In this document: in pieces, positions 6,538-22,444 of the stretch
Position numbering within the stretch: position 1 is the stretch's first letter
Layout: every line of letters begins with the position of its first letter
Sequence record: MW812342.1
Reading direction: 5' to 3' (one strand)
DNA: 64,000 bases
Notes under the pieces: model-generated
Told to the model about the DNA's origin: nothing
Databases searched by the model: none
What the model saw: only the letters and a program-made list of their open reading frames with translations
Translations under genes and position numbers: made by a program

Positions 6538-7422
6538 ATGGGTGTTAAAATTAGTTGGGATAGCCAAGCAGGGAAAGGGTTGGATGCGGTGGAAGTGTAT
6601 CGCAGCAAAACCAAAATTGACCCGCAAAATCCGGGTACACCTTTGGCAACGCTTGACCCGAACCTGACGTCCTATGAGGACTTCACTGCGGTCAACAAAA
6701 ACCTGTATTACTACTGTCTGGCGGCGAAGAAAGGAACTGAGCGGTCATTCGGTACCAGCCAACTGACGGGGTATTTCTCTGAAACGGGGCCAGGTAATGC
6801 GACCATCGCGCGCGGTAGCTGGAATGCTGGGTTTATGGATCGTGTTCCCAGTGCCTCATTCATCACCGGGGCCGATTTGGCGGCCAAACTCACCGGACTG
6901 GTTTACAGCGGTGGGGTAGGGTCACCGAGCAACTGGTTTAAGTTCGCGTACAAAGGGAAGATTCTGTTCTTCCCAGACGTCGCGTTGTTCACCACAACGT
7001 GGAACCGTTTCTACGATGCGGGCATGGTGTTTGGTACGGACGACTTCGGTAAGACACCGGCGGGGGTGCCGGGATCGGTTAACCAAAAACGTGTTGTGGA
7101 GATCAACGGGTTGCAATACATCGCCCGTTTGGCGAAGCTCTCGGACATCGATTTGGGTAAATACCTGACGGCGCAAGACGATACCATCGCCAGCGAATAC
7201 CGTTCAACGTTAACCCGTCTCGTTCGCGCAACGGTTGAGACTCAAGCCGGGGCCCTACGTCGCCTTGGTGACGGAACCAGCCTGCCGGTGATGTTGGGTC
7301 AGCACTTGTATTCGGCAACGCAGGCGGCTTATGCGCCAGCCGGGTCACCGGCCACATTGGCTGCCATTTCTATCACCAGTAACGCCACCACCGCCATTGT
7401 GCTTGAACTGATTATGCCTTAA
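6538..7422 (+). CDS. Virion structural protein, type C' (cassette 2)
   Basis: 294 aa, colinear with ORF 3122 (ISWDSQAGKGLDAVEVYR; KF.YKGKILFFP; ends VLELIMP). Confidence 0.7.
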   Translation: MGVKISWDSQAGKGLDAVEVYRSKTKIDPQNPGTPLATLDPNLTSYEDFTAVNKNLYYYCLAAKKGTERSFGTSQLTGYFSETGPGNATIARGSWNAGFMDRVPSASFITGADLAAKLTGLVYSGGVGSPSNWFKFAYKGKILFFPDVALFTTTWNRFYDAGMVFGTDDFGKTPAGVPGSVNQKRVVEINGLQYIARLAKLSDIDLGKYLTAQDDTIASEYRSTLTRLVRATVETQAGALRRLGDGTSLPVMLGQHLYSATQAAYAPAGSPATLAAISITSNATTAIVLELIMP

Positions 7423-7470
7423 AAAATAAAGACCCTACTCTCCCGTAAGGAGAGTAGGACTTTTTTATTT
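7421..7470. terminator. Bidirectional intrinsic terminator
   Basis: A-tract, then CCTACTCTCC-CGTAA-GGAGAGTAGG, then a T-tract, between convergent genes. Confidence 0.8.
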
Positions 7471-7950
7471 AGTGACCAGCAAACCGTTCGTGTTTAACGA
7501 GGGCTGTCCTTCGGTGACACACTGGAAGAACGTCATCCCTTCGCCGTTACCGGAAGCCGGGTCAACTGTCGAATACGAATAGGTTGCATTCTTGCCCTGA
7601 CTGCCATGTAATCGGTAATAACGTGTGCCGGTCAGCAGCTCAACACTGCCATCGATTTTACCGAGCAGATCTTTATACAGCTGAGGTGATTGCACATCCC
7701 CGCCCGGATAACTGGCATGCCATGTGGCCCCATTATCCACCACGGTAACGGAGAACGGCATCAGTTCCAGCTTACCGATTTGCGGCTGGTACTTGACAAA
7801 GGTCTCTTTGGCAGCGCTACACTGGTAGACCGTGAACTCGGTCGCAGCAACCGGAATGGTGCCGAATTGGCCCGTTGAATTGGGTGCCATTGCACAGCCC
7901 GCAACCAACAACATCAGCGCGACGAATAACATTTGAAGTTTACGCATCAT
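7465..7950 (-). CDS. Predicted lipoprotein
   Basis: ATG at 7950 has the SD-like AGGTAGGG. The signal peptide MMRKLQMLFVALMLLVAG-C carries the lipobox LVAGC. Confidence 0.7.
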   Translation of the reverse strand: MMRKLQMLFVALMLLVAGCAMAPNSTGQFGTIPVAATEFTVYQCSAAKETFVKYQPQIGKLELMPFSVTVVDNGATWHASYPGGDVQSPQLYKDLLGKIDGSVELLTGTRYYRLHGSQGKNATYSYSTVDPASGNGEGMTFFQCVTEGQPSLNTNGLLVTK

Positions 7951-8075
7951 TTCCCTACCTTTCACAATTTCGATTTTATTAGTGACAAACGTCATATAAC
8001 AAGCCACGTCTGTAAGAAAGTGCGACCCTGCTCCATTTTCTATGCACCACCTGTTAACACTAAGAGGAACACCTG

Positions 8076-8606
8076 ATGGCCATCATCACCCCACAGGCGC
8101 AACTGGTTGCCCTGTTCAATGCGAAAAACGCAAGCCTGCCTCAAGCACTGGCTGCTAGTGACGTTACCTTCGGTGCCGTTGCTTCATACGTGCCAGGCGA
8201 CGGTAGCGATACCCGTAACACCAAACTGACCATCACCGCAGTGGCGGATAACGCCCACTTCACCGGTGCGAAAGAGCTGCACTACACCCGTCTGAGTTCC
8301 GGCATTGTTGGCCCGAAAGCGGTTACCGCTGCACAGGCTGACTGGGACACCGACGAAGAAGTGCTGGCGAAGCTGAATGCGGACGTCATCACTGCCGGTA
8401 AAACCAGCGATGCGTTTGCGTTGTCTGACCTGACCATTACCCGTACCGACGGTGAGAATGGTGCGAAGGTGATTGATATCAGCATCAACGCTGGTCACAT
8501 CAAATACCTGCCGGGTCAAGTGGCGACGTACACCATTACGGAAGAGATCCAGAAAAGCGATCTCAGCACCACTGACGGCGAGCTTGACGGCTTCACCGTT
8601 GCTTAA
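8076..8606 (+). CDS. Short virion structural protein (type-A N-terminal domain plus GELDGF tail)
   Basis: 176 aa with SD GAGGA and TATG at 8041. It has the RNTKLTITA...F.G.K.LHY.R module and ends KSDLSTTDGELDGFTVA. Confidence 0.7.
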   Translation: MAIITPQAQLVALFNAKNASLPQALAASDVTFGAVASYVPGDGSDTRNTKLTITAVADNAHFTGAKELHYTRLSSGIVGPKAVTAAQADWDTDEEVLAKLNADVITAGKTSDAFALSDLTITRTDGENGAKVIDISINAGHIKYLPGQVATYTITEEIQKSDLSTTDGELDGFTVA

Positions 8607-8635
8607 TACCCTGACCGGTATGTTACGGTTCGGTA

Positions 8636-8670
8636 AATAGGGGGCCTCGGCTCCCTGTTTTATTTTTTTC
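8636..8670 (+). terminator. Intrinsic terminator
   Basis: AATAGGGGGC-CTCG-GCTCCCTGTT followed by a T-rich run. Confidence 0.6.
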
Positions 8671-8684
8671 TTCAAGGAGAGCAC

Positions 8685-9185
8685 ATGGCTAAGACATTGC
8701 AAGAAGAGTTCATTGATCTGGTGAATGCCAAAAATCCGGGGTTAGGGTTATCGTTAGCGGACGTTGATTTCAGCGACCCCAGCGATTACACACCTGGTGA
8801 GGAAGGTGGTACACGTAACAGTGTACTGACGTTAACAGCAAAAGCCAGCAGCGCAGGGTTCAAGGGTAGCAAAGCATACCACTTCAACCGCTTCAACTTT
8901 ACCCATCCAAATGGGGAAGATGAGGTGTCGGTAATGATGAGCGACCTAGACCTGTACTGGCAGGAGGATGATTATGTACTGGCGCAGTTTAACAAAGCCT
9001 TGCCTAACCATCCCGTTACCCTGTCAGAGGTTACCATTACCCGCACCACGGTAGAAGGTCGACTGCGCGTGAAGATAAAAATCGTTCCGACGCATTTGAA
9101 GTGGCAAGGTGCGTATGTGTTTGAAATCTACGACGGTAAAACGTTACTGGACAACCGCAACGGCGAGTTAGACGGGTTTAATTAA
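8685..9185 (+). CDS. Short virion structural protein, paralog of 8076
   Basis: 166 aa; LVNAKNP.L...LADVDF...RNSVLTLTA...F.GSK.YHF.R; ends NRNGELDGFN. Confidence 0.7.
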   Translation: MAKTLQEEFIDLVNAKNPGLGLSLADVDFSDPSDYTPGEEGGTRNSVLTLTAKASSAGFKGSKAYHFNRFNFTHPNGEDEVSVMMSDLDLYWQEDDYVLAQFNKALPNHPVTLSEVTITRTTVEGRLRVKIKIVPTHLKWQGAYVFEIYDGKTLLDNRNGELDGFN

Positions 9186-9194
9186 TAAAAGGTG

Positions 9195-9220
9195 TACCGC
9201 TACCCTTCGGGGTAGCGGTA
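9195..9220. terminator. Hairpin/terminator at a convergent junction
   Basis: Perfect 11-bp stem TACCGCTACCC-TTCG-GGGTAGCGGTA with a cUUCGg loop. Confidence 0.75.
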
Positions 9221-9250
9221 TCCTTATTTTAAACGGCCTGTACGGCCTTC

Positions 9251-9961
9251 TCAGGCGTTTAACAGTGGAATCTGCGTAATCGGCTGACTAAGTGGTTGCG
9301 GCTCCCATGTGAGCGTTACGGCGTTAAATGCACGCTTGATGTTCTGATAGCGCGCATTGACACACACCGTGTGTTTCACATCCCACCGTTCATGCTCGGG
9401 AATCGCGTTTTCAATCTGCTCACGAAAGAACAGATAGTTGCGATTGTAGTTCAGCGTGACATCCGAGATCGACGGGTAGCTGTAGAGATGCGGGTCATCG
9501 TTCTTGTCGGCATACGACGGCCAGCCGAAGTTCTTCACCGCTTCGTAGAACGAGTTGGCAAGGAACGCTTCAACCTTCATCATTTCCATAATCCGCAAGA
9601 ACATCAAATCCGCAAACGGCTTATCCGTCGCCCGCGACAAATTGCCAGCCGGGGTATCCGGGTAGGGTACCGGCGACGGGGCTTTCTGATACAGCAGGTC
9701 GTGGATACACGCGGCGGCAGCCCACGGCCCATCAGGATGAAGAATCGGTTGCAACGGTGCCGGGATGCTTGCCAAGTCAGTCACAAAGCCCGCTGGGGCG
9801 GTGACGTACATCAGCGTGTCAGGATGGACACCTGAGCGGTGCACCATGTCATCCAGTCCCGGTTGGTCACGGTACAGTGCCCGCAACGTAAACGGCACCC
9901 GAAAGTCTTCTGTCAAGATGAACCACTGCTTATCCAACACTTTGTACTTCAACTCGTTCAT
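9251..9961 (-). CDS. DUF1353 family protein
   Basis: The motif PAGFVTDLASIP...P.GPW..AA..HD.LY...AD..F...M is characteristic of DUF1353. Confidence 0.8.
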   Translation of the reverse strand: MNELKYKVLDKQWFILTEDFRVPFTLRALYRDQPGLDDMVHRSGVHPDTLMYVTAPAGFVTDLASIPAPLQPILHPDGPWAAAACIHDLLYQKAPSPVPYPDTPAGNLSRATDKPFADLMFLRIMEMMKVEAFLANSFYEAVKNFGWPSYADKNDDPHLYSYPSISDVTLNYNRNYLFFREQIENAIPEHERWDVKHTVCVNARYQNIKRAFNAVTLTWEPQPLSQPITQIPLLNA

Positions 9962-10093: not shown

Positions 10094-10693
10094 TTATTTA
10101 GAACATACGCCTACCTTGATAGCGTAGTCGCCCATTTCACGGTAGACGCGGTCATACCAACCGTACGTGAACTCTTCGTTCTGCACACGCTTCTCGGAAA
10201 TCTCGGTGTAGTACGACACCTGATGAGACGTCAGTGCGAACATCAGACGGTTGAAGCCGTCCAGACCACGGGCTTTCAGGAACCCTTCCAGCGCGGTCAT
10301 GGTTGCCGGGCCGATACCACCATCGGCATCGATGTCGGCGTACAGTTTACCCTGACGGTTCAATACGTTCAGGATGCGTTGCAGAGATTTGATGCAGTTA
10401 GCACGACCGGCGTTGATGCCAAAGTCGAACATACGGTCAGCCAAGAGCGGATTCCATGCGAGAATACGGTCAAGGCGCATACGGTCCCACCACCCTTTCT
10501 TGTAGATGTCAAGAGCCATCTGACGCGTCAGGTTACGCATGTCGCCGGTGTACCCGTTTTCACGCGCAGTGGCTTGTGTGATGCCGAAGTTGGTTGGGCC
10601 ACCCAAGTCGTTCGGGTTGTTAACATAACCGGCTTCGATGTTAACCTTGGCCGCAATGATGCCTTCCATACTCCAACGGTCTACAGTTGTCAT
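10094..10693 (-). CDS. Endolysin, glycoside hydrolase family 108 with C-terminal peptidoglycan-binding domain
   Basis: Catalytic-region motif EAGYVNNPNDLGGPTNFGIT, plus FDFGINAG, LQRILN, DGGIGPAT and GW..RV. The ATG at 10693 has SD GAGGA. Confidence 0.88.
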   Translation of the reverse strand: MTTVDRWSMEGIIAAKVNIEAGYVNNPNDLGGPTNFGITQATARENGYTGDMRNLTRQMALDIYKKGWWDRMRLDRILAWNPLLADRMFDFGINAGRANCIKSLQRILNVLNRQGKLYADIDADGGIGPATMTALEGFLKARGLDGFNRLMFALTSHQVSYYTEISEKRVQNEEFTYGWYDRVYREMGDYAIKVGVCSK

Positions 10694-10736
10694 AACATTT
10701 CCTCTAATAAAGAACAACAGTCATAACAACCGTAAG

Positions 10737-10776
10737 AAAAAAAAAGAAAAGCGACCCACCCCCGAAGGAGTGGGTA
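10737..10776 (-). terminator. Intrinsic terminator closing the radical SAM operon
   Basis: ACCCAC.CC-GAA-GG.GTGGGT hairpin with a long A-tract on the plus strand (U-tract on minus). Confidence 0.7.
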
Positions 10777-10780
10777 CGGC

Positions 10781-11437
10781 TTAGGCTACACCGTTATCCG
10801 CAGCAAGCTGCTTAATCGCGGTGAAGTCTTTTTGCTCCGTGAGGATACGGATGCGTTGTTTCAGCACCGACATGACCATGTGCAGGTCATTGTCACGCGT
10901 GATGATTTCCGCATAGAGGGCTTTCACGTCCTCCACCGTCCACGGCTCGATAGGCTCGTTGTTCAGCGTCATCCAGTACATAGGGTCAACCCCAGACTGA
11001 ATATAGCTTTGCATCGATTCGCGCGACTTCTCATCGGCTTGGAACGTCTTGTCACGGAACGCAATCGGTGCGTAGCGTTCTGCGTTATACTTGTCGTTCA
11101 GCTTCGGATAAATCGCATTGACTTCCTGATAGAGGTAGTTCTCCGTCGAGGTCAGCGCGGTACGTACTTGGTCTAAATCAATTTCCAGCACGTTCGCGAT
11201 GAAGTCTTTGGTCTTCTTCATCAGGAATTCAATTTCAACCGGCGACAGGTCGAAGCCTTTGAGTTTCTCGCGGGCTTTCTTGTCACTCATACCGTTAATC
11301 AGATGGTAGTGCAGCAGCAGGCAGAACCCGATACGGTTTTCCATCTGGTCTTGGTATTCTTCCACGTAGTTACCGTAGCGGTCGATACGCGTGCCCCGTT
11401 CGAAATAGCGGGCTTTTATTTCGTCGTTACTAAGCAT
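10781..11437 (-). CDS. DUF4376 domain protein (tail-fibre assembly/chaperone-like)
   Basis: The C-terminal FQADEKSRESM...W.TLNNEPI..T.ED...LY..I..R...LH...LK.RI pattern is typical of DUF4376, which usually lies next to tail-fibre genes. Confidence 0.65.
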   Translation of the reverse strand: MLSNDEIKARYFERGTRIDRYGNYVEEYQDQMENRIGFCLLLHYHLINGMSDKKAREKLKGFDLSPVEIEFLMKKTKDFIANVLEIDLDQVRTALTSTENYLYQEVNAIYPKLNDKYNAERYAPIAFRDKTFQADEKSRESMQSYIQSGVDPMYWMTLNNEPIEPWTVEDVKALYAEIITRDNDLHMVMSVLKQRIRILTEQKDFTAIKQLAADNGVA

Positions 11438-11973
11438 CCGGATTCTCCTGCAATCCCAAGGTCAACCAGCAGACCGAAGTCAATGAACTGGAAATCATTT
11501 TCCAACTCTTCACCCCAGAGCAGTTTGGCCTCTTCTGCTTCGTCGCCCATCTCTTCCAGCGTTTTGCGTGCCACTTCAAATTCGTGGTAGAACGCATCGG
11601 TCAGGTGAGTACCGCGCAGCGCACGGATAGTCACACCAGGGAAGTTCAGGGCCAATCCCACGACGTTGGTTGGGTCTGCATCGCCGGTAGAACGGCGCAG
11701 CACCTGCAACTTGTGTTTCGGGAACGCCACCACACGTTCTTCGAAACCGGGATTACGCTTCTCGATTTCGACAACAGACTGGTGGTCATCTTCCACGCCC
11801 TGTAAAGGCAGGATGACGTTCAGGCCATAACGGTTCAACAGACGAATGGTGTCATCGTTGAAATCTTCACCCGGCACGATCGCATGGATGTTGTACAGCT
11901 TGTGTTTGCGAAGAAACGCATCGACAAGGTGAACGTTACGCCGAGTAAAATTGTGAATCAGCAATGACTTCAT
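11416..11973 (-). CDS. Hypothetical accessory protein of the radical SAM cluster
   Basis: 185 aa; overlaps both neighbours, suggesting translational coupling; no family recognised. Confidence 0.6.
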   Translation of the reverse strand: MKSLLIHNFTRRNVHLVDAFLRKHKLYNIHAIVPGEDFNDDTIRLLNRYGLNVILPLQGVEDDHQSVVEIEKRNPGFEERVVAFPKHKLQVLRRSTGDADPTNVVGLALNFPGVTIRALRGTHLTDAFYHEFEVARKTLEEMGDEAEEAKLLWGEELENDFQFIDFGLLVDLGIAGESGCLVTTK

Positions 11974-13282
11974 TCGAGGCTCCGAGTTCTAATTTAAGTT
12001 TTTCTTTCTGCATACGGTCACGTACACAGCTCGCGCAATAACACATGGATTTGTCATGCAGGTCGGCGACATTCGTGGTACCGGTCTTCTGGTACCAGTA
12101 TTCGGACACCAACAGTTTCGCGGTCGTCCAACCACACTGGCGACGCTCAGCATGGTACTCTTTACGCGCTTCCAGCTCACCGTCACCGTTCTCGTAAGAC
12201 GCGGCCGCACAGCTACCACACGAGTGTTTCATCGGGCAACCTAAGCAGGTGGACGGGTAGTTGGTGTACTGCGTCTGGATTTCGTTCAGGAGCTTGTGAC
12301 CGTCAATGTTCACAATCTCACGCCCACGCAGTTCCGCGACTGCCGAACGGGTGGTTACGGTTGACATGAAGCGGTTACAGCCGTAGATCTTACGGTCGAA
12401 GCCGAGACAGGTCATGTGGGTCAGCGTACCGCAGTAAGGACGTACGCGGTCTGGGTGCAGACGGGTTGCTTCATCGTCCAGCAACTTCTGACGCCAGTCC
12501 GGGTCCCATGTCGCCATGAAGTCCAGCCCATCAGGAATGATGTGGGTCAGGATGTTACGTGGTGACTTGTGGTAGCCGTTGTCGACCCAGTAATCGATAA
12601 CGTCAATCATCTGGTTTGCAATACCCAGAGCCATATCGCGCGACAGGATGTCTTCGTACGTGACGTTACCGGAGATGGTACCACCGCCCGTTTCTTTAAT
12701 CAGGTGAATCATGCTCTCGCCGTAACGAGGCAGAGTTTCACCGGTAAAGGTGGCTTTGATACCGAGTTCTGCAATACCGACAGATTTCAGGTATTGGTAG
12801 CCGCGCATCGCCTGCTCGTACGAACCTTCACGCGACGTGGTGAAGATACGATAGCGGTCGTGCACTTCTGGCAGACCATCGATGGACACACCAATCGACA
12901 GGCGGTCTTTCCAGCGCTCAATGATTTCTTTGCTGATGGGACGGTCGAACAAGGTGCCGTTAGTAGAAATAGAGAATACGTACTGGCGGTTGTCGCGCGC
13001 CGCTAATTCTTCGGCTGTCTCAAAGACGGCTTTCAGAATCTTCGGCTGCATAAACGGCTCACCCCCGATGATGTCGATAATGATTTCGGCATCTTCGATG
13101 TGACGGTCGCGGTCAAAACACGCATGAATAAAATCGACAGCGTCATCCACTTTGTTGTTACGCGGATACTTACGTTCGTAGCAATACGAACAGTCGAGAT
13201 TACAAGACAGGTTAGTTACCACCTGATACGTGAGTGTGGGGCGCTGTTTACGCGTCTGCGATGTAGATCGTTCTTCGCTCAT
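11936..13282 (-). CDS. Radical SAM/SPASM peptide maturase
   Basis: It has CNLDCSYC (CX3CX2C), GGEPF, ISTNG and VSIDG. SPASM Cys array: YCG...C...GCNRF...CLGCPMKHSCGSC...C, with an extra C-terminal CYCASC. Confidence 0.92.
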   Translation of the reverse strand: MSEERSTSQTRKQRPTLTYQVVTNLSCNLDCSYCYERKYPRNNKVDDAVDFIHACFDRDRHIEDAEIIIDIIGGEPFMQPKILKAVFETAEELAARDNRQYVFSISTNGTLFDRPISKEIIERWKDRLSIGVSIDGLPEVHDRYRIFTTSREGSYEQAMRGYQYLKSVGIAELGIKATFTGETLPRYGESMIHLIKETGGGTISGNVTYEDILSRDMALGIANQMIDVIDYWVDNGYHKSPRNILTHIIPDGLDFMATWDPDWRQKLLDDEATRLHPDRVRPYCGTLTHMTCLGFDRKIYGCNRFMSTVTTRSAVAELRGREIVNIDGHKLLNEIQTQYTNYPSTCLGCPMKHSCGSCAAASYENGDGELEARKEYHAERRQCGWTTAKLLVSEYWYQKTGTTNVADLHDKSMCYCASCVRDRMQKEKLKLELGASNEVIADSQFYSA

Positions 13283-14172
13283 TTGATTACCTCATTGCGA
13301 TGTTTGCGAGCGTGAATCGTGCGATTGATGTAACGGTAGGCTTCTTGCCCAATGACTTTCGCCAGCATGTTACAGCCGCTATCGATTTCCATCTCGACAT
13401 CCATCGTGTAGCCGATAGACGCATCGGAGTCCAAGCGAACCAGACCACTGCACGCGTTGCACGACTGCTCAAAGAACTTGCTGATGGAAAACCCTGTTGA
13501 GCCATTGTTCATGACATTCAACCGTTCAATCTGGTCTTCCATTTTGTTGTAACCGAACATGAAGTTCATCACCAAATCTTGGTTCAGCGGTTTCTTCATG
13601 CGGTTGTCCAACAGCAGCGTCATGTCTTTGAAGCCGTAGTGGTAGAGTGCGCGGTGCAAGTCCAGCAAGTCAGTGTGCCAATATTTATCAGCCAACTGCT
13701 CACGAGTCACCACGGCCCACGTATGGACGTTGTTCAGCGCAGCCATCACTTCGAAGGCTTCGAATGCACCATCTTCAACGACACGCCAGAGCGGACGTTC
13801 GCTCTTTTTGTATCCATCGAACGACACACAGATACGGTTAAACTGTTGCAGCATCGGGAGGTGCTCCAGACGCATTTTCAGACCGTTCGTGTATAGCTCG
13901 TGAGTGAGATGCGGGTAACGGGCTTTGACCTCTGCCAGCAACGGCTCAATCTTGCGGGTTGCCATTAACGGCTCACCGCCCGTCCAGTTCATCCCTTGTA
14001 AAGTCGGGTACTTCTCCAGTTGTTCAAACAGCGCTTCACGCTGAATTTCCCGACCAACATCTTTTGTGTCCATGTAATACGCTCCGCCGCAGAAACTACA
14101 ATCCAAATTACACTTGGACGTCGTCACTATCGACAGCTCGGTAGGGGGACGTATTTGTGGTGCATCGGTCAT
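13279..14172 (-). CDS. Radical SAM protein (short, Twitch-like C-terminal Cys)
   Basis: It has CNLDCSFC, WTGGEPL, LYTNG and VSFDG, then C-terminal CNAC...GC. Its stop overlaps the start of the SPASM gene (ATGA). Confidence 0.88.
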   Translation of the reverse strand: MTDAPQIRPPTELSIVTTSKCNLDCSFCGGAYYMDTKDVGREIQREALFEQLEKYPTLQGMNWTGGEPLMATRKIEPLLAEVKARYPHLTHELYTNGLKMRLEHLPMLQQFNRICVSFDGYKKSERPLWRVVEDGAFEAFEVMAALNNVHTWAVVTREQLADKYWHTDLLDLHRALYHYGFKDMTLLLDNRMKKPLNQDLVMNFMFGYNKMEDQIERLNVMNNGSTGFSISKFFEQSCNACSGLVRLDSDASIGYTMDVEMEIDSGCNMLAKVIGQEAYRYINRTIHARKHRNEVIK

Positions 14173-14190
14173 TGCAGATTGCTCCAGTTT

Positions 14191-15069
14191 TTAATAGATC
14201 GCGAAAAGGGGGTCTTCCTCAAATTTCGCGCCCACATCCAACAGGAAATCGGAGTGGTAGGCTTCGAGAATTTGATTCAGAATCGCATGACGGTCGTTAA
14301 CCCGTTTGAGGTCATCGAGGGTCACGATTCGCGACTTGATGTTTGAAACTGCCTTTTCTTCGTCAGCTGTCAGGGAAACCTTCGTCAGAAGGAAACTCAC
14401 CAGCTTGCTCAGGTCAGCCTCGGTGCCCGGCGCTTCACCGTAACGCCACTGAACCAAGAACTGCATCCACGGTTTGCGGATACGGCGACTGATTTCGTGG
14501 GGGTCGGTAATCGCTTCGAACTGCTCATCTACCGCATTCCAGCGGAACTTGTAGCTGTACGCCAGCAAGTCGGCCAGACAATGGATACCGAGCGTTTCAT
14601 AACCTACGATGTGGTGGTATTTTTCCACACCTTTATATTCTTCCGTGCCGGTTGGTACTAAGGTGTACCAGAACGGGTTAGAAGACGGGTAGTCCCAGCT
14701 CCACTCGCGACGAACCATGGGAATGACGTCCAAATCCGCAAACGGCGTGAAGATCATTTCCAAATCCATCGAGTGGTTCAGGACTGCATCAGTAAAGAAA
14801 TACTTACCGTCAATCAGTCGGCCACTGGAGTTCAGCTCGCTTTCGTTAAACTTCACATGCTGAACGGTGTGCTTACCGATGGAGTAGGTATTCTCTTCGG
14901 TGTACTGCTTACGGACAATGTCCCGCCCACGTACCTTAGGCCATTCGCCTGGCAGCATCGAGATAAGGCGTACTTCGTCCGCGATGTGTGCTTTCACACT
15001 GTCGTACGACGAAATGTGTAACGGGAAATTTTGCGTCGTGCGGTACGCCAAATGGAGGTCGTTCTTCAT
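14191..15069 (-). CDS. Hypothetical accessory protein of the radical SAM cluster
   Basis: 292 aa with SD AAGGA, lying between the precursors and the first rSAM; no family recognised. Confidence 0.65.
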   Translation of the reverse strand: MKNDLHLAYRTTQNFPLHISSYDSVKAHIADEVRLISMLPGEWPKVRGRDIVRKQYTEENTYSIGKHTVQHVKFNESELNSSGRLIDGKYFFTDAVLNHSMDLEMIFTPFADLDVIPMVRREWSWDYPSSNPFWYTLVPTGTEEYKGVEKYHHIVGYETLGIHCLADLLAYSYKFRWNAVDEQFEAITDPHEISRRIRKPWMQFLVQWRYGEAPGTEADLSKLVSFLLTKVSLTADEEKAVSNIKSRIVTLDDLKRVNDRHAILNQILEAYHSDFLLDVGAKFEEDPLFAIY

Positions 15070-15087
15070 GGTTTCTTTATCCTTACT

Positions 15088-15297
15088 TTATCGGTTACCC
15101 GCGCCGTAACTGCACCCACCACTGCACGTCCAGCTACAGCTACCGCCGCAGTTATAGTGCGTAAGTGGAAGCCCAGCAAGGTTGTTGGTCGAACTGACCG
15201 TGCCGCGTGTGGCGATATAGTTGTTGGCCTGTGCGGTCGTGATGTAGCCTTCGACGCTTTGCACCCGATCGCGAATGTTTTTCAATGAGATTGCCAT
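15088..15297 (-). CDS. CXXX-repeat precursor peptide 3 (short core)
   Basis: 69 aa: leader MAISLKNIRDRVQSVE... plus core CGGSCSWTCSGGCSYGAGNR (4 Cys); SD GAGGA. Confidence 0.8.
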   Translation of the reverse strand: MAISLKNIRDRVQSVEGYITTAQANNYIATRGTVSSTNNLAGLPLTHYNCGGSCSWTCSGGCSYGAGNR

Positions 15298-15318
15298 AGG
15301 TCCTCACTCGATAGATTT

Positions 15319-15711
15319 CTATCGACTGCCTGAACAGCCAGAGCATCCCGTACAACTTGAACTACAGGAACCAGAACAGTTACCGGAGCACGTACCCGAA
15401 CAACCGGAGCACCCGCCCGAACACGAACCAGAACATCCTGAGCACCCACTGGTACACCCAGCAGTACAGCTCGACGAACAAGAGGAACCGCAGCTCCCTG
15501 ATGCCGAACCGGAACAGCCACCTGAACAGCTAGAACAACCCCAGCTACAGGTTCCGCCGCAATCGTAATGAACACGTCCTTGGCCGCCGAATAAGTCGAC
15601 GTTATTGGTTGCCTTACCACGAATGTAGGTTTGTACCCCACCTTCCGTTTTTAAGGCGTTCGCTTCGATCACCGCAATGCGATCCGCGAGGTTTCGTAAG
15701 TTGATAGCCAT
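15319..15711 (-). CDS. CXXX-repeat precursor peptide 2
   Basis: 130 aa: 50-aa leader MAINLRNLADRIAVIE... plus an 80-aa Cys/Ser/Gly core with 20 Cys; SD GGGAG. Confidence 0.82.
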   Translation of the reverse strand: MAINLRNLADRIAVIEANALKTEGGVQTYIRGKATNNVDLFGGQGRVHYDCGGTCSWGCSSCSGGCSGSASGSCGSSCSSSCTAGCTSGCSGCSGSCSGGCSGCSGTCSGNCSGSCSSSCTGCSGCSGSR

Positions 15712-15720
15712 TGTTGCTCC

Positions 15721-16110
15721 CTACTGTGGACCAGAGCACGCAGAACAACCGGTGCAGCTAGAAGAACATGACCCAGCGCAACCGCCGCCACACTTACCAC
15801 TGCACGATGACGCACAGGTACCTGAGCAACCCGAACAACCCGAACACCCACCACCGCAGTTAGAAGAACAGCTACCCACGCACGTAGAAGTACAAGTCCC
15901 TGCGCAGCTGGTACAGCTTGCAGAACACCCGTTAGAACACGACCAGCTACAACTGCCGCCACAATCCAGACGGGAGGGAGACCACCCACTGAACGAGTCC
16001 GCAGCGTTGTAAGCTTTCGATGCCACCTGCCCGTCTACACGGGGCCCGGTCGCATAGTTTGCTTCCACATTGTTAACGCGGTCGCGTATGTTTTTCATTG
16101 AAATTGCCAT
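15721..16110 (-). CDS. CXXX-repeat precursor peptide 1
   Basis: 129 aa: 49-aa leader MAISMKNIRDRVNNVE... plus an 80-aa core with 21 Cys; SD AAGGA. Confidence 0.82.
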   Translation of the reverse strand: MAISMKNIRDRVNNVEANYATGPRVDGQVASKAYNAADSFSGWSPSRLDCGGSCSWSCSNGCSASCTSCAGTCTSTCVGSCSSNCGGGCSGCSGCSGTCASSCSGKCGGGCAGSCSSSCTGCSACSGPQ

Positions 16111-16126: not shown

Positions 16127-16165
16127 TAAAAAAATGAGGACGCTGCCATAATGACAGCTCCTCAT
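16127..16165 (-). terminator. Intrinsic terminator between the fibre gene and the precursors, with TATG at the hairpin apex
   Basis: The minus strand reads ATGAGGA-GCTGTCA-TTA-TGGCAGC-G-TCCTCAT-TTTTTT. Confidence 0.7.
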
Positions 16166-16175
16166 GTAATAAGTG

Positions 16176-17381
16176 TTATCGTGAACCCGCTTCGGCCTGT
16201 ACGTCGTCGCGAGAAGTCAGGCTGCTGTTGACGTGTACCGCCGCCTGAACCACACCACCATATTGCTTGTGGAGATAGTTCGGGTGTGGGTTATCCGCGT
16301 TAACGTGGTTCTGGAGATTCTGCGACAGGGTGTTGATGGAGTTCTGCAACCCAGCAACTTGCTGTTTCAGTGCATTGAGCTGACCAGAGAGATCCTGAAT
16401 CTGCTGCTGCGTGTCGGAACCGGCGGCTTCCAAATCACTGATGCGCTGCTTGAGCCCATTGATGACTTGGTTTTGGTCGTTAACCATCTTCTGGAGTTGC
16501 AACACCAGAGAGTTCAGGTCAGCCTGTTGCAGAGCTGCCTTTTGGTAGTTCAACGCCACCGAGTTCAGCTGGTCGTTCCACGAACCGAGCGCATTGACCA
16601 CGGCGTCAATACGTGCCCCGAGAGCCGTGTCCGCTGCTTTCAAATTACCAATGTCCGCGAGGACAGCGTTGATGGCAGTCTGGACGGTTTGAATCAGCGC
16701 GCGGATTTCAGTTTCAGTGAGGCCATTCGCCTGATGAATGTCCAGTGCGTGAACGTTACCTTTGGCATCGATGTGCGATTGCAGCGCCGCCATCATCTGG
16801 GTTTGCATGTCAGTCATGGCTGCCAGAATCTGTTGGAGCTGAACTTCGTTACCGGAGTTAATCGCATCGGTCATCAACGCGAGCTGCGTGATGATGTATT
16901 CGAAACCAAACAGGTCGCCGAGGTCTTTAAAGGCCGGGGCGGCTGCAAAGGTATCCGGGACATTACGCAGGTCAGCAAAGTCAACTTTGCGGTCTTCAAG
17001 GTTGGCATCAGCCAACGCCTGTTTAATCGCAGAGATAACCGCCGACTGTGGCCCACCGACAACCTGTGCAAGACAGACGATGTCGGTTGGAATGGCCGGG
17101 TTAGTGACGACCACACCCATACAAATTTCGCGGTTCTTAGCGAGCTTCATGTACGCAGGGTGAATGTAAATCAGCTCGTAGTCGGTACCGCGTTTATAGA
17201 TGGTGTTGGGTTGGTTGGCAGGCCGCATACGGAACGTATCCGCAAAGAACGGCCCTGCTGGGAAAGCGAACGCACGGTTGACCTTCCCCCCACCTAACAC
17301 AACCGGGACATTGACCGCGTTACTGGACGCAGCCCCTGTCAGGTCAAGTGGGTATTGAAATAGAATATCTGGCATGGCCAA
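16176..17381 (-). CDS. Virion structural/tail-fibre-like protein with a long coiled coil
   Basis: 401 aa. It has the N-terminal Y.LD.TG...N / P.GPFF module shared with the giant fibres, a heptad-rich C-terminal half and H...NPH motifs. Confidence 0.7.
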   Translation of the reverse strand: MAMPDILFQYPLDLTGAASSNAVNVPVVLGGGKVNRAFAFPAGPFFADTFRMRPANQPNTIYKRGTDYELIYIHPAYMKLAKNREICMGVVVTNPAIPTDIVCLAQVVGGPQSAVISAIKQALADANLEDRKVDFADLRNVPDTFAAAPAFKDLGDLFGFEYIITQLALMTDAINSGNEVQLQQILAAMTDMQTQMMAALQSHIDAKGNVHALDIHQANGLTETEIRALIQTVQTAINAVLADIGNLKAADTALGARIDAVVNALGSWNDQLNSVALNYQKAALQQADLNSLVLQLQKMVNDQNQVINGLKQRISDLEAAGSDTQQQIQDLSGQLNALKQQVAGLQNSINTLSQNLQNHVNADNPHPNYLHKQYGGVVQAAVHVNSSLTSRDDVQAEAGSR

Positions 17382-17422: not shown

Positions 17423-20400
17423 TTACGGCAACTTAGGCATAAGATTGACCGTCAGTTTCGACGGGGTTACCGTTCCGCCATAAAAGTTGACGCCGTTACC
17501 GATGTACAACGCATTGTCCGCAATCATCACTGGGATGTGTTGGCTGAAGACAACGTCCCCATGCACAATCGGGAAATAGTCATCGATGGAAACCCCCGCA
17601 GGCATCGCAACTTTATAAACTTCCAGCACACCGCCGGTGATGCGGGCAACGGAACCGCTTACGTTCGTTGCAGCACGAATCCCCACGGTGGACGCGTCAG
17701 AGGTATAGAACACTGTCGCTGTGCCGTTATCCACGTTTGCGATGCTGAACGCGGCGAAGGAAGCAGCTTGTCCACCGGTGATGCCATCAAACACAAACGT
17801 GTTTTTGACACCGACTTCCGCCTGAAGCGTGACTTCTGCCAATTGAGAAGAGACCCTCGTGGTGACGCCGAGGTTCGCGTTGGTAAATCCGATGGTGCCG
17901 GAACCCAACGTGTAACCCGGTTTCAGTTTGATTTTCACCGTCGGGGTCGACGGCGTCACTTCCACGATCATTCTCCATGCAATCGAATTGACAGCCGACA
18001 TCCCCGGTATACCCACTGAGTACCCGTTATCCACGTCTGAAACTTGACCAACATTGGCCCCTTTCATCGTGAACTTCTTGTAGTCTTTAGGTAAGGTAGA
18101 TGTCAGTGCATCGCGAAACAGCTCGATGGGCACCTTGTGACTTTGTGCAGCAAAGACGCCGCCAATCAACGAGACATCCAGATAACCGCCAGCGGTGGCC
18201 GCAGGTGCAGCAAGCGGTTGTTTACGCAGCAGGCCCAGACGAGAAAGGCGCGCTTCACTGTCCACATTCACATCGTGACTGTATACGGTTTCGGCGTGCT
18301 CCGTCAGCTGCTTCAATTCACCGAGGCGTTTCACTTTCGTGAACTCACTCGACAGAATACGCTGACTGTCTGTTACCACCGTCCCGATGAACAACCGGGT
18401 ACTGGTATCTGGCAGGCGTTCGGTCAGCAGCTGGTATTCCGGCTTCCCGTTGACTACCGCAGCGTGCATGTAGAACGTGCGGTTTTGATACGCACCGGGG
18501 AACAACGTCTTAATGTTCTGGTTGTACGCATCCAACGTGTAATAGTCGGAGCCGAACCGTAAGCTCTCCGACTCGGTGATGTACAACTCCCACCCTTCGG
18601 CTGTTTTTACCCCGGCCACAATCTCGAACGGTCGAGCGGTCGGTACCCATCCCGGCACATTGGCCATGTACTCCTCAGGAGTCGCGGCTGGGCCAGCAAG
18701 GTAGGCCGGTGAGACGTAGGCTTGGTTTGTACGAGCAAGCTTATTACCGACAATCGTCAACTGCGTCGGGTTGTAGTAATACGCTGAACTCAACATCGTC
18801 GCACCAGTCTTAACGAGCTTCGACCCGTTTAAGGAGAAGATCATCTCAAAATGCTTCGACCCCGCGCCCCCAACCACGTTGTACTGATACACGTTTGGCA
18901 AATGCAGGAAGCCGGTACCATCACCTTTCTCGTAAAAGATAGGCTGCGTGTAACGTTGGTTGTGGTAGTGGTAGTACGTGATGCTCATTGCCGTAATAGA
19001 CGGCTCGGCAATGTTGACGCCGTACACCAAGTCGGTGGTGGTTATCGGGAAGGTTACTGTTGAACCCGACACGGTAGGGTAAATCTGGAACAGGTAGTAG
19101 TCGACGAAACGGCTGCTGTTGCGGTCACTCTTCACCGCCACCTGCACCAACCAAATTGGCTTGGCATCCTTCGGACGAATCGCCCACACCGAGAACTGTG
19201 GATCAGCCCCTGCGTTGATGTACTCGTTCGCGTATGCGTTTGCCGCCCCAGACGGTGCTTGTGACTTAATGGTGCTGATAAGCGTGTTCCAGTCGCTTTG
19301 GCTAATCGTCAGCACGTCAGCCGTTGGGCTGTCACCCACCGCTTGGTAGTTCTGACTGCCCGGCGCTGTCCAGTAAGCACCATGTGGTTTCCCGTTTTGC
19401 AGGGTACCGGATGCACACCACGTCATGTTCCCCAGCTTGTAATACTTCGCAAGGTCAAACGCGCGACGTACGTTAGACGGGCCTAACCCACCAAAGTCCG
19501 GCGAGTAGCGGGTGTTCGGGTCAGTCTCGACATAGACCGCGCTGGTCTCGGTAATCGGAGCCAGCAGGTAGGCGTTATTACCGAGGTATACCGCCCCACT
19601 GTACCCGACCTTCAACACCGACCCTACACCGCCGTCAAATACCCACAAATCCACCTGATTCATACCGTAGGCACTGTGGGCCTCCAGATGGTCAAACAGC
19701 GAACGGGTATCATCACCCACTTTGCAGCGGGCAATGCCTGTCTGCGTGGCAGCATCACCGGGGTCAAAGTACGTCCAGAAATACGGGCTGTCATCCGTGG
19801 GGTAAACGTGGGTACGGCTGTTGGCTTGGCCGTATGGCCATTTCGTCTGGAACCCTTTGGCGTGCAGCTCCTCCCCGGTGGCGAGATACAACCCATCAGC
19901 ATCAATCTTCAGTGGGAAAATCTCCGGGTTCTCCAGCGTGACTGCGAACGAATCCATATCGACCACATACGACGACGGCCACACGGTAAACGGATACGAC
20001 CCGTCGGCATTCGCCAAATAGATTGTACCGACCACACCCACACGCAAGGTCGCGTTTTTCAATGCGACACCGGCATGCGTCTGTGGACCATGTGCAATGT
20101 TACGCACCTGCCACTTTGCCAGCCCTGCTGCCGTCACTGTCGACAAACCGTTCGCCACCACCGTGGTGGAACCGGGGTCAATTGGTTGACGCAGGTTCAC
20201 AAAGACACCTTGACGGCTGCTACCACCGGTTAATGCCACAGAGGCAAACGTGATGGTTTTGTTGGCGTTGACCGTACCGACCAACATAAAGGTGCGGTAA
20301 TAGTTGTTGGTGATTTCCATACGCAGGATATACACCCGGTCTTTGTAGACCACAACATGATCCGTCGATTGGTTCGGGCTGTAGTTAAACGTAGAACCGG

Positions 20401-22444
20401 AGCCGGGCAGATCGGTTGGGAAGGTCGTCTGCCACACACGCAGGTGCTTCTTCTGGTTCAGCGTCCCGTCGAACATGACGGTGTAATAGTTGTTGTCTGT
20501 TCCCAGACACACCATCGCATCTTCGCCACACACGACGATCGCCACCAGAGCCACCCCAGGGTACGCACTCAAGCCTGCCGGTTGATAAACGTTCGAGGTT
20601 TGCTGGCGTTTAACCATTTTCCCCGCGCTGTCAATCGGAGCGTAAGAGTAATAGATGTGGTCCGTATTCGGTAAGCCGTCGTTGGCGTTCCGTAAGGCAT
20701 ACACCGTATCCCCTTCCTGCTTAATCACGCCCAGTGACTGTGCCGGACTATAACGCTTGGCAAACCCTGCGTAGTTTCCAACCGCCGGGATAGGCAGGTA
20801 GCCGGGATTACCGTAAGCTGCACCACCGGTCGTCCACGACGGCATCAGACCGTCCAGCACACCTTTGTACTCATTCAGGCGTTGCTGCACGTTGTAACCC
20901 TGCTTAGACGTCACCACTTTATCCGTGGTGGCATCAATCGCATCCCACAGCTGCAACAGACCCGCATCCGTATCGGACGCAGTTGGGACACCTGTCAGGT
21001 CAGCGAACGTGTGCGTGTGGTTAGCCAGCGCTTTATTTGCCAGCACTGCACGAATCGCGTTGGTCAGCGGTTTCTCAGCAGGTGCTGTGTTGTTGATGTT
21101 CCCCACACCCACATCCGCGGTCGTCAGGGTGAGGGATTGGGTGGTACCGTTATCAACGAACTTCTTCCCGTTAATGGTGTACGTGTTATCCACGTAATCG
21201 TCCAGTGTCTTTTTCAGGACGTTAACGGCGTACTGCGAAATCGCGGTACCGGAAGAGATGTTGGCAGACAGGTTGGTAATGGCAAACAGACCCGGCACCT
21301 TGTCGGTTGCGGTAGGCAGTTGCGCATTCATGGTCAATGGGGAAGACTGCTTAGCGGTACCGAACGCTTTGATGGTATCCGTTGAAGCAAAGTAGGCGTT
21401 CCCCGGTAGCAGTTTTACTTCAGACAGGTACAATGAGACCATATCCGGTGTAACTAAGTAGGCACCGTTAAAGATTGGTGCAACTGCGCCATTGAGCACA
21501 TACGCGGTGTTCAAACCGGAACCCAGCTCAACACCCACGCCCCGTTCATTGCTGTCTGCATCGGCAGTGATGTTAATGGCACGGGTGGTGGTGATAAGGA
21601 ACTTGTCACCTTGCAAGGTAATGACGTGGCTGGAGTCGGCGGTACGGAATGTCAGGGCACCGTTGTTCAGCACCTTGAGGCGACCACGCAGTTCGCCGAG
21701 TACCACCGGCATCAGGGTGTCGATGTGTGCCTGCTGAATGCCGTTTGTTTTCATGATGGCGACTAACTCGTCCAGCGTCTTACCGAACGCCTTCGTTGAG
21801 TCAATTGCCTTGGTCAATACTTTTAACGCCCCAATCTCATCAGCCGTGTACTGGTGTGCGTTTTTGATACGGTGGTGACTGTACAGGTTGTCATCGAAAA
21901 TCTTTTTACCGTTGGCAAAAATCAAATCGGTGACTCCGGTGTACGCCGCATCCATTTCCCCTGCGCGTTTAATCAAACCCTGACGGATGTCGTCCAGCGC
22001 TTTAACCACCTCGTCACGCAGCAATGCTTCGTCCAGGTTGGCAGGCGGGTCGATTGCAGGAATCACTGGCGCATAACGCATCAGTTCAGACCAGTCGGTG
22101 TTACGTGGGTCTTTGATGTCCTCTTTTACTAAGAACTTACCAATCTCGGTTTGTGGCACGCGGTATTCACGGCCAACGGAATAGATTGTGTAGTCAACGG
22201 AGGTGTCCCCGTTAATCAACATAATCCCGCCGTAGATTTGGTCTTTCATTGCGACAGCGGCTTCTTTGTAATAGTAGCCGAGGTAGTAATCCAGACCCTC
22301 AATAAGCTTTACGCCTGCGCTGTTCTTCAGCTCAAGCCCGGTACGGAAGAACGGCCCCTCAGGAGGGATGACCACATTGTATTTGTTCGGATACGTGGTC
22401 GTCAGTAGCGTACCGGTAAATTTGGCTACGTTCGTGCTCGCCAT
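17423..22444 (-). CDS. Giant tail-fibre-like virion protein 3
   Basis: 1673 aa; PPEGPFF N-terminus, fibre motifs (DVGVGNINNTA..KP, HTH, PTA...G) and a large beta-rich insert. Confidence 0.7.
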   Translation of the reverse strand: MASTNVAKFTGTLLTTTYPNKYNVVIPPEGPFFRTGLELKNSAGVKLIEGLDYYLGYYYKEAAVAMKDQIYGGIMLINGDTSVDYTIYSVGREYRVPQTEIGKFLVKEDIKDPRNTDWSELMRYAPVIPAIDPPANLDEALLRDEVVKALDDIRQGLIKRAGEMDAAYTGVTDLIFANGKKIFDDNLYSHHRIKNAHQYTADEIGALKVLTKAIDSTKAFGKTLDELVAIMKTNGIQQAHIDTLMPVVLGELRGRLKVLNNGALTFRTADSSHVITLQGDKFLITTTRAINITADADSNERGVGVELGSGLNTAYVLNGAVAPIFNGAYLVTPDMVSLYLSEVKLLPGNAYFASTDTIKAFGTAKQSSPLTMNAQLPTATDKVPGLFAITNLSANISSGTAISQYAVNVLKKTLDDYVDNTYTINGKKFVDNGTTQSLTLTTADVGVGNINNTAPAEKPLTNAIRAVLANKALANHTHTFADLTGVPTASDTDAGLLQLWDAIDATTDKVVTSKQGYNVQQRLNEYKGVLDGLMPSWTTGGAAYGNPGYLPIPAVGNYAGFAKRYSPAQSLGVIKQEGDTVYALRNANDGLPNTDHIYYSYAPIDSAGKMVKRQQTSNVYQPAGLSAYPGVALVAIVVCGEDAMVCLGTDNNYYTVMFDGTLNQKKHLRVWQTTFPTDLPGSGSTFNYSPNQSTDHVVVYKDRVYILRMEITNNYYRTFMLVGTVNANKTITFASVALTGGSSRQGVFVNLRQPIDPGSTTVVANGLSTVTAAGLAKWQVRNIAHGPQTHAGVALKNATLRVGVVGTIYLANADGSYPFTVWPSSYVVDMDSFAVTLENPEIFPLKIDADGLYLATGEELHAKGFQTKWPYGQANSRTHVYPTDDSPYFWTYFDPGDAATQTGIARCKVGDDTRSLFDHLEAHSAYGMNQVDLWVFDGGVGSVLKVGYSGAVYLGNNAYLLAPITETSAVYVETDPNTRYSPDFGGLGPSNVRRAFDLAKYYKLGNMTWCASGTLQNGKPHGAYWTAPGSQNYQAVGDSPTADVLTISQSDWNTLISTIKSQAPSGAANAYANEYINAGADPQFSVWAIRPKDAKPIWLVQVAVKSDRNSSRFVDYYLFQIYPTVSGSTVTFPITTTDLVYGVNIAEPSITAMSITYYHYHNQRYTQPIFYEKGDGTGFLHLPNVYQYNVVGGAGSKHFEMIFSLNGSKLVKTGATMLSSAYYYNPTQLTIVGNKLARTNQAYVSPAYLAGPAATPEEYMANVPGWVPTARPFEIVAGVKTAEGWELYITESESLRFGSDYYTLDAYNQNIKTLFPGAYQNRTFYMHAAVVNGKPEYQLLTERLPDTSTRLFIGTVVTDSQRILSSEFTKVKRLGELKQLTEHAETVYSHDVNVDSEARLSRLGLLRKQPLAAPAATAGGYLDVSLIGGVFAAQSHKVPIELFRDALTSTLPKDYKKFTMKGANVGQVSDVDNGYSVGIPGMSAVNSIAWRMIVEVTPSTPTVKIKLKPGYTLGSGTIGFTNANLGVTTRVSSQLAEVTLQAEVGVKNTFVFDGITGGQAASFAAFSIANVDNGTATVFYTSDASTVGIRAATNVSGSVARITGGVLEVYKVAMPAGVSIDDYFPIVHGDVVFSQHIPVMIADNALYIGNGVNFYGGTVTPSKLTVNLMPKLP

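Follow-up and report, generated by a model that had tools for sequence, protein, structure and literature searches.

A radical SAM operon beside the tail genes of an Erwinia jumbo phage probably serves to mature a cysteine-ladder tail appendage

The 64,000-nt stretch analysed here (hereafter the window) is 100% identical to record MW812342.1, the Erwinia phage pEa_SNUABM_10, and its part 10781-16110 is 96% identical to phage Machina; pEa_SNUABM_10 is a jumbo phage of the genus Machinavirus, which is currently placed in the Chimalliviridae. An operon of eight open reading frames (ORFs) at 10781-16110, all on the minus strand, encodes three small paralogous proteins rich in cysteine (pre1, pre2 and pre3, called precursors below), a conserved partner protein (orfA), a short radical S-adenosylmethionine (SAM) enzyme (rSAM-A), a radical SAM enzyme of SPASM type (rSAM-B), an orphan (orfB) and a DUF4376 protein. 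An earlier, sequence-only reading of this DNA had proposed an operon of exactly this composition and order, and all eight ORFs were recovered where it had placed them. Its function is probably the maturation of a cysteine-ladder appendage of the tail, and the product would be built into the virion rather than secreted.

The precursors share a ~50-residue N-terminal region and an entry motif that precedes a periodic Cys array, with the consensus C-G/N-G-S/T-C-S-W-x-C in the window. In pre1 (15721-16110; 129 residues), ~49 N-terminal residues are followed by a CXXX/CXX array of 21 Cys at a spacing of 4 or 3, such that Cys mostly occupies every fourth and sometimes every third residue. Its paralogue pre2 (15319-15711; 130 residues) carries a 20-Cys array (5 + 15, one Cys position having been lost), and the short paralogue pre3 (15088-15297; 69 residues) has the same N-terminal region and entry motif with 4 Cys. 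C, S, G, T and A account for nearly all residues of the 80-residue cores, which contain no Asp, Glu, Lys or Arg, and Cys makes up 15-16% of the array proteins, regularly spaced among small residues. All three proteins matched phrog_6085 (E 1.5e-48 for pre1, 1.2e-49 for pre2 and 3.8e-29 for pre3), and a six-frame scan of the whole window showed no other long array, the remaining runs comprising at most four Cys.

Comparison with the model phage SPN3US indicated that the arrays are real genes under strong constraint. The array differences between the window and SPN3US were distributed over the first, second and third codon positions as 17/15/48 in pre1 and 22/16/56 in pre2, and although ~70% of the codons had changed, every Cys was kept (21 of 21 in pre1, 20 of 20 in pre2); this third-position bias together with the full retention of Cys identifies the Cys frame as the coding frame. 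By the same codon-position statistics, the alternative-frame ORFs that overlap the arrays, such as 15282-15641 and 15669-15989, are not genes. Long alternative-frame and antisense ORFs occur on both strands throughout 15275-16012 (also 15275-15568 and 15677-16012) and arise from the repetitive GC-rich array codons.

The triad is also stable over greater distances: it was present in 15 of 15 jumbo-phage loci from IMG/VR, its order unchanged and its members having 21, 20-23 and 2-4 Cys, including the third, short paralogue of ~69 residues. That the number and register of Cys are fixed across genera points to a defined structure, and judged by their conservation the arrays look like a conserved structural element.

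These genes are easily overlooked. In SPN3US, the annotated gp166 (111 residues) is a wrong-frame ORF laid over the true 134-residue Cys-array gene, and the array paralogues of 130 and 68 residues have no annotation at all; the SPN3US triad lies at 8192-9221 of the locus examined (L004, JN641803), which corresponds to 143191-144220 of the record, and its correctly framed genes occupy 8829-9221, 8414-8818 and 8192-8398 of the locus on the minus strand. In several other deposited genomes, too, the stretch matched by the precursors carries no annotated feature. Searching a protein database with pre1 gave only 4 matches, which shows how seldom array genes are called in deposited data, and a PDB sequence search with pre1 returned nothing meaningful. 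The substrate genes are therefore mis-called or missed in many deposited genomes, that of the model phage SPN3US included.

The strongest evidence for a role in the tail came from relatives of rSAM-B outside the jumbo phages. A protein search with rSAM-B returned a jumbo-phage family at 49% identity or more and a next group at 31-39%; three members of this second group were looked up, and all three lay in phage or prophage tail modules. In a Campylobacter P2-like prophage the gene order is baseplate W/J/I, fibre, a 250-residue protein, two radical SAM genes, DUF1353, sheath and tube; in a Deferribacter prophage the cassette follows a GpJ-type tail protein; and the third relative lies on a 213-kb phage contig. 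The gene before the cassette encodes, in each of the three, a fibre protein with a Cys array at its C-terminus, and two of them share the C-S-W entry motif of the window. The Campylobacter fibre protein additionally carries the PF12571 tail-fibre N-terminus.

In relatives, the array forms the C-terminus of tail-fibre proteins of 250-670 residues. The family of the precursors, phrog_6085, matched the C-termini of long proteins that have tail-fibre PHROGs at their N-termini, as in locus L110 (phrog_2631 at 2.7e-32), and the same layout was found in L006 and L111. Furthermore, a hidden Markov model (HMM) built from 31 jumbo-phage "leaders", that is, the N-terminal regions of the precursors, matched a stretch of 25-35 residues just ahead of the array in the fibres of L111 (1.4e-7), L008 (4.8e-6) and L109 (2.8e-4). 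Taken together, the fibre fusions and the leader homology suggest that the precursors of the window are free-standing versions of a fibre C-terminal module, and they combine the fibre homology and the tail-module location that characterise a tail appendage. The sequence-only reading had preferred a structural product over a secreted antimicrobial, and these two lines of evidence make this preference considerably more likely; that the structure in question is the virion is what I infer.

A pattern scan of IMG/VR yielded 79 distinct loci with an rSAM-B relative (25-99% identity). A Cys-array ORF, defined as a same-strand ORF within ~3 kb with at least six closely spaced Cys, was found beside the rSAM-B relative in all 79. 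In the genome collection, an array accompanied only a dozen or so full-length rSAM-B matches; most of the 80 loci that the pattern scan gave there were discarded, being partial matches that belong to other radical SAM families and have no arrays. Where neighbours in 17 distant loci could be named, they belonged mostly to baseplate, tail and tail-fibre families, and the four-part core of array, orfA-like protein, rSAM-A and rSAM-B recurs in at least two tail types. True members of the NCBIfam family TIGR04115 were also found beside arrays in viral contigs (434-586 bits); relatives in L013, L113 and L120 pass the cut-off of this family with 383-586 bits, and that of L120 comes after genes for a baseplate wedge protein and a tail protein.

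Within the deposited phage genomes, the system is confined to SPN3US-like jumbo phages and uncultured faecal contigs, so that the SPN3US-like jumbo phages are its only cultured carriers. Some deposits of the phage rSAM-B bear bacterial names (Salmonella, E. coli, "[Curtobacterium] plantarum") and lie on contigs of ~240 kb (for example P0003, P0007 and P0034), and one cluster is present on 598 contigs; bacterial assemblies evidently often contain the genomes of jumbo phages. In one subfamily (L013, L115, L118, L127 and L128) the array is N-terminal and followed by a conserved C-terminal domain of ~110 residues without Cys, the reverse of the fibre-type layout.

Both enzymes belong to the radical SAM superfamily, with PF04055 scores of 43.8 bits (E 4e-11) for rSAM-A (13279-14172; 297 residues) and 56.5 bits for rSAM-B (11936-13282; 448 residues) against a cut-off of 29.5. 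In rSAM-A, C21, C25, C28 and a GGEP motif are invariant and C238, C241 and C267 nearly so; the C-terminal three-Cys motif probably denotes a single auxiliary cluster. Ten Cys of rSAM-B are invariant across 14 diverse relatives, namely the cluster residues C27, C31 and C34, and downstream C284, C302, C346, C349, C355, C358 and C383. These seven downstream residues, in a region that aligns to the C-terminal part of CteB, mark it as a SPASM-type enzyme, a type with about seven such Cys for two auxiliary clusters, and a Pfam scan at E ≤ 0.01 reported no SPASM model for it. It has no N-terminal RiPP recognition element (RRE; RiPP stands for ribosomally synthesised and post-translationally modified peptide), the cluster motif beginning at residue 27. 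The best PDB match of rSAM-B was CteB (5wgg, E 2.3e-12), and among the best 25 NCBIfam families listed for the two enzymes, those at the top for rSAM-B were TIGR04115 (126.5 bits, cut-off 350) and the PapB family (125 bits, cut-off 340). An origin of rSAM-A and rSAM-B by recent duplication was considered and rejected, as they have only the cluster motif region in common. In locus L110, an rSAM-A-type and an rSAM-B-type enzyme are fused into one protein of 686 residues; this gene lies at 7134-9194 of the locus (IMGVR_UViG_3300028886_000034, 284 kb), after an orfA-like gene and a tail-fibre protein that ends in a Cys array.

On the sequence evidence, orfA (14191-15069; 292 residues; phrog_8030) would be a third core component of the cassette that is not itself a substrate. 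Iterated HMM searches placed orfA-like proteins beside the radical SAM pair in the prophages L005 and L006 and in the viral loci L106-L111, and the family is tiny, with 45 clusters among 1.84 billion representative proteins. Its AF2 model was confident (pLDDT 88), and Foldseek found no matching fold in the PDB (best E 0.16); in BFVD the sole match was the orthologue of orfA itself. The same iterated searches found orfB (11416-11973; 185 residues; phrog_7988) solely in the 15 jumbo loci and confined the DUF4376 protein (10781-11437; 218 residues; phrog_8169), the last gene of the operon, to jumbo-phage loci. The PDB held no sequence match for orfB and nothing meaningful for the DUF4376 protein, which matched PF14301 (E 5.5e-10) and, weakly, tail fiber and tail protein PHROGs. 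Just outside the operon, a DUF1353 protein (9251-9961, minus strand; 236 residues; PF07087 at E 4.4e-16) is possibly associated with the cassette: the corresponding gene directly follows the radical SAM pair in the Campylobacter prophage L006 and directly follows DUF4376 in CR5, and relatives of this protein are labelled "tail assembly chaperone" in RefSeq.

The nearest described system is the pair of TIGR04115 enzymes and TIGR04114/PF27846 targets, in which a SPASM-type radical SAM enzyme likewise adjoins a protein with long CXXX arrays. The sequence-only reading had named these families. TIGR04115 and TIGR04114 proved indeed to be the best matches, only below their cut-offs: TIGR04115 is the top family for rSAM-B, and a CXXX-repeat target stands alongside as in that family, yet its score falls well short of membership, and the TIGR04114/PF27846 model (cut-off 20 bits) gave 9.3 bits for pre1, 12.8 for pre2 and no match for pre3, while the array fibre of L008 passes with 20.7. 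TIGR04119, named as well, was not among the matches listed for the window proteins; it is a SPASM-like domain in its own right that lacks a radical SAM core, so its equation with orfA or rSAM-A was rejected. The entry motif also differs, being of the C-S-W type in the window and of a Gly-Leu/Met type in TIGR04115-type loci, and the window cassette has orfA and a further radical SAM enzyme in addition. By curated scores, the enzymes and precursors of the window thus fall outside the TIGR04115/TIGR04114 system and, as far as sequence can place them, form a sister clade of it; by architecture and context the window system would work like this CXXX-repeat system. A literature search found no biochemical or biological study of TIGR04115 or of the window clade.

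Comparisons with better characterised enzymes mainly bear on chemistry. PapB (freyrasin, NF047865) has the same enzyme architecture and a Cys-rich substrate, and rSAM-B stays well below the family cut-off; the substrate of PapB has acidic acceptors after each Cys (Asp in freyrasin), which the window arrays lack. The maturase CteB of SCIFF (TIGR03974) is more distant (61 bits against a cut-off of 425) and has an N-terminal RRE that rSAM-B does not have, and its precursor has six Cys in ~45 residues, compared with 20-21 Cys in the 129-130 residues of pre1 and pre2. More generally, PapB and CteB act on peptides of ~45 residues, whereas substrates of the window type have 20-21 Cys or are whole fibres. 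QhpD, which acts on quinohemoprotein amine dehydrogenase and whose model matches rSAM-B weakly (65 bits), provides a precedent for thioether cross-links in a protein. A second precedent is CrpC of Methanococcus voltae, a radical SAM/SPASM enzyme shown to install thioether cross-links in CrpA, which is a Cys-rich protein and not a short peptide (PMC13692751). CrpA resembles the precursors in its shared N-terminal region and C-terminal Cys-rich repeat. Both systems differ from the cassette in that they are cellular enzymes or subunits with a single radical SAM enzyme each and other repeat units. The pairing of a SPASM-type with a short radical SAM enzyme that acts on a short-period repeat protein recalls HxsB/HxsC, though scores are low (rSAM-B 82 bits, cut-off 370; rSAM-A 33 bits, cut-off 268) and the target repeat is His-Xaa-Ser instead of Cys-based. 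I know of no link between the His-Xaa-Ser system and phage tails. Finally, the cassette of the Campylobacter prophage occupies the slot of the fibre-assembly gene of P2-like phages, immediately behind the gene of the fibre and ahead of that of the sheath; P2-like fibre-assembly chaperones are non-enzymatic, whereas here the slot is filled by two radical SAM enzymes and two accessory proteins.

The following mechanism would account for these observations. The three small proteins would be free-standing versions of the domain that ends the tail fibres of other phages, each composed of a short fibre-shaft segment, the entry motif and a strictly periodic Cys array. In the reducing cytoplasm, rSAM-A and rSAM-B would act on the arrays, and orfA may present the substrate to the enzymes, a role suggested by the lack of a detectable RRE domain. 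As to chemistry, cysteine-to-carbon thioether cross-links, within or between chains, would be the most likely, because thioethers are formed by PapB-family enzymes, CteB and QhpD, to which rSAM-B is closest among characterised enzymes, and also by CrpC. The result would be a rod that is stapled covalently, does not respond to redox conditions and sits on the tail or baseplate alongside the adjacent fibre proteins. The thioether chemistry, the role of orfA and the retention of the product in the virion are the parts of this scheme that I infer.

Several findings weigh against a virion appendage made in this way. The virion mass-spectrometry tables of SPN3US name gp167-169 as tail proteins, do not list gp164-166, and list gp161-163 as non-virion traces only. 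This non-listing is weak evidence because the precursor genes are mis-annotated or unannotated in SPN3US, and a core that is free of Lys and Arg and possibly cross-linked would also escape tryptic analysis. rSAM-B lies far under the curated cut-offs of every named family, and since the arrays have no acidic acceptors, the chemistry may differ from that of PapB. The AF2 monomer model of pre1 was disordered (pLDDT 40), with N-terminal helices only, and is uninformative on the array. The arrays are 94-98% conserved between close relatives, as against 71% for the large neighbouring fibre protein of 1673 residues, so they are not the variable receptor-binding determinant. Lastly, a branch of TIGR04115 enzymes in Firmicutes metagenome-assembled genomes (MAGs) is accompanied by Cys-rich peptides of 50-90 residues and resembles ordinary RiPPs. 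In two of these MAG loci (L015, 7968-10100; L019, 7938-10124), the TIGR04115 enzyme is fused to a TIGR04119 domain and lies beside Cys-rich peptides of 73-88 residues.

The Firmicutes branch leads to the alternative that survives best, though still an unlikely one: a classical RiPP system, in which the N-terminal ~50 residues are leaders removed by a host or unlinked protease, and cross-linked peptides are released at lysis as antimicrobials, signals or agents of superinfection exclusion. The layout of leader plus core, the several paralogous precursors, a SPASM-type maturase with RiPP maturases as best matches, and the adjoining endolysin all agree with it, as do the TIGR04115 enzymes beside short Cys-rich peptides. 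The precursors also resemble RiPP precursors, by sequence, in having a putative recognition region and core beside a maturase, the N-terminal ~50 residues being conserved separately from the core. What a RiPP system would further comprise, a linked peptidase and product export, is missing from the eight proteins and their flanks: as the sequence-only reading had claimed, searches of the operon proteins against Pfam, NCBIfam and PHROGs detected no peptidase, transporter or immunity family, nor an RRE, and the flanks likewise gave no peptidase, transporter or RRE family. Moreover, the second half of the supposed leader is homologous to a fibre shaft, the array ends whole tail-fibre proteins in relatives, and the cassette lies consistently in baseplate and fibre modules, even filling the fibre-assembly slot of a P2-like prophage, all of which favours a tail appendage over a released peptide.

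Slightly less credible still is a module that serves assembly only, in which the modified array would aid the folding or trimerisation of neighbouring fibres, as a chaperone acting within the molecule or in trans, and then be cleaved off or left behind, so that mature virions would lack it. Here, the chaperone position of the cassette in the P2-like prophage and the link of the cassette to DUF1353 (with its RefSeq label) and DUF4376 would find a ready explanation, as would the absence of the precursors from the SPN3US virion tables, although with mis-annotated precursors the latter negative is uninformative. A conserved 21-Cys ladder served by two dedicated radical SAM enzymes would be a heavy investment for a transient helper, and no self-cleaving peptidase domain was detected.

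A ladder for metal ions or Fe-S clusters, which the sequence-only reading had offered as an alternative, is improbable. Arrays that chelate ions or clusters, in the manner of a metallothionein or a metal-stabilised fibre needle, with radical SAM enzymes that load or remodel them, would suit the high Cys content and regular spacing among small residues, and metal-stabilised fibre tips exist in other phages. The nearest characterised relatives of rSAM-B are, however, thioether-forming maturases of peptides and proteins, and no known metallochaperone or cluster-assembly family was detected with NCBIfam or Pfam. That the substrate of the enzymes is a nucleotide, cofactor or lipid, and that the Cys-rich ORFs lie there by chance or are no genes at all, as weak matches of rSAM-A to the QueE, MoaA, viperin and NrdG activase models might suggest, can be practically dismissed given that all these matches lie far under their cut-offs, that arrays co-occur at 79 of 79 viral loci, that the partners keep a conserved architecture, with a fusion of the two enzymes in one phage, and that codon-position statistics and complete Cys conservation mark real coding sequence.

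A broader proposal can be put forward only tentatively: that radical SAM enzymes staple tail fibres, that the CXXX ladder is a virion building block in which thioether or other radical-installed cross-links hold chains together whatever the redox state, and that TIGR04114/04115 and their sister clades are mainly phage tail-maturation systems serving at least two tail types. On this view, the three jumbo-phage paralogues, with their constant order, might even make up one mixed fibre. No earlier description of radical SAM modification of phage structural proteins is known to me or was found: literature searches on radical SAM enzymes in jumbo phages, SPN3US, CXXX repeats, and thioether or SPASM tail fibres yielded no paper on the system, and a comparative review of jumbo phages does not mention it. 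If the proposal is true, a chemistry familiar from antibiotic-like peptides becomes a means of building virus particles, two uncharacterised database families and the orfA family gain a biological context, and the missing proteases and exporters of these "RiPP" clusters are explained. It would also suggest a disulfide-free covalent stabilisation for virions that are assembled in a reducing cytoplasm and live in anoxic habitats. SPN3US-like jumbo phages already have virion proteomics data.

The surroundings of the operon are those of a tail module next to a lysis gene, and both its proposed terminators and its position between tail genes and endolysin were borne out. Within the operon, the genes are separated in order by gaps of 9, 21, 18 and 18 nt and then overlap by 4, 38 and 22 nt. 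Upstream, between the neighbouring tail gene and pre1, a terminator-like hairpin lies at 16127-16165 (minus strand; 14-pair stem followed by U7; -19.6 kcal/mol, z -2.65), and a second one at 10754-10775 (minus strand; 9 pairs, 6 of them G-C, with a T-rich tail) directly follows the DUF4376 stop codon. Beyond the upstream hairpin, two minus-strand tail genes (phrog_2163, virion structural protein) encode proteins of 401 residues (16176-17381) and 1673 residues (17423-22444), and mass spectrometry identified the SPN3US orthologues of both, gp167 and gp168, as tail proteins. The gene of the 1673-residue baseplate or fibre protein is the most diverged with respect to Machina (71% identity, neighbouring genes all 94-99%), and this protein is the likely determinant of host specificity.

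On the other side, the next gene beyond the downstream end of the operon encodes the endolysin (10094-10717; GH108 and PG_binding_3). Farther on, a strong bidirectional terminator-like hairpin of 11-12 pairs at 9194-9221 separates the convergent DUF1353 and DUF7941 genes, the latter at 8685-9185 on the plus strand. The longest endolysin ORF starts at a TTG codon and has 207 residues, compared with 199 annotated for the Machina orthologue; translation therefore probably begins at a codon farther inside.

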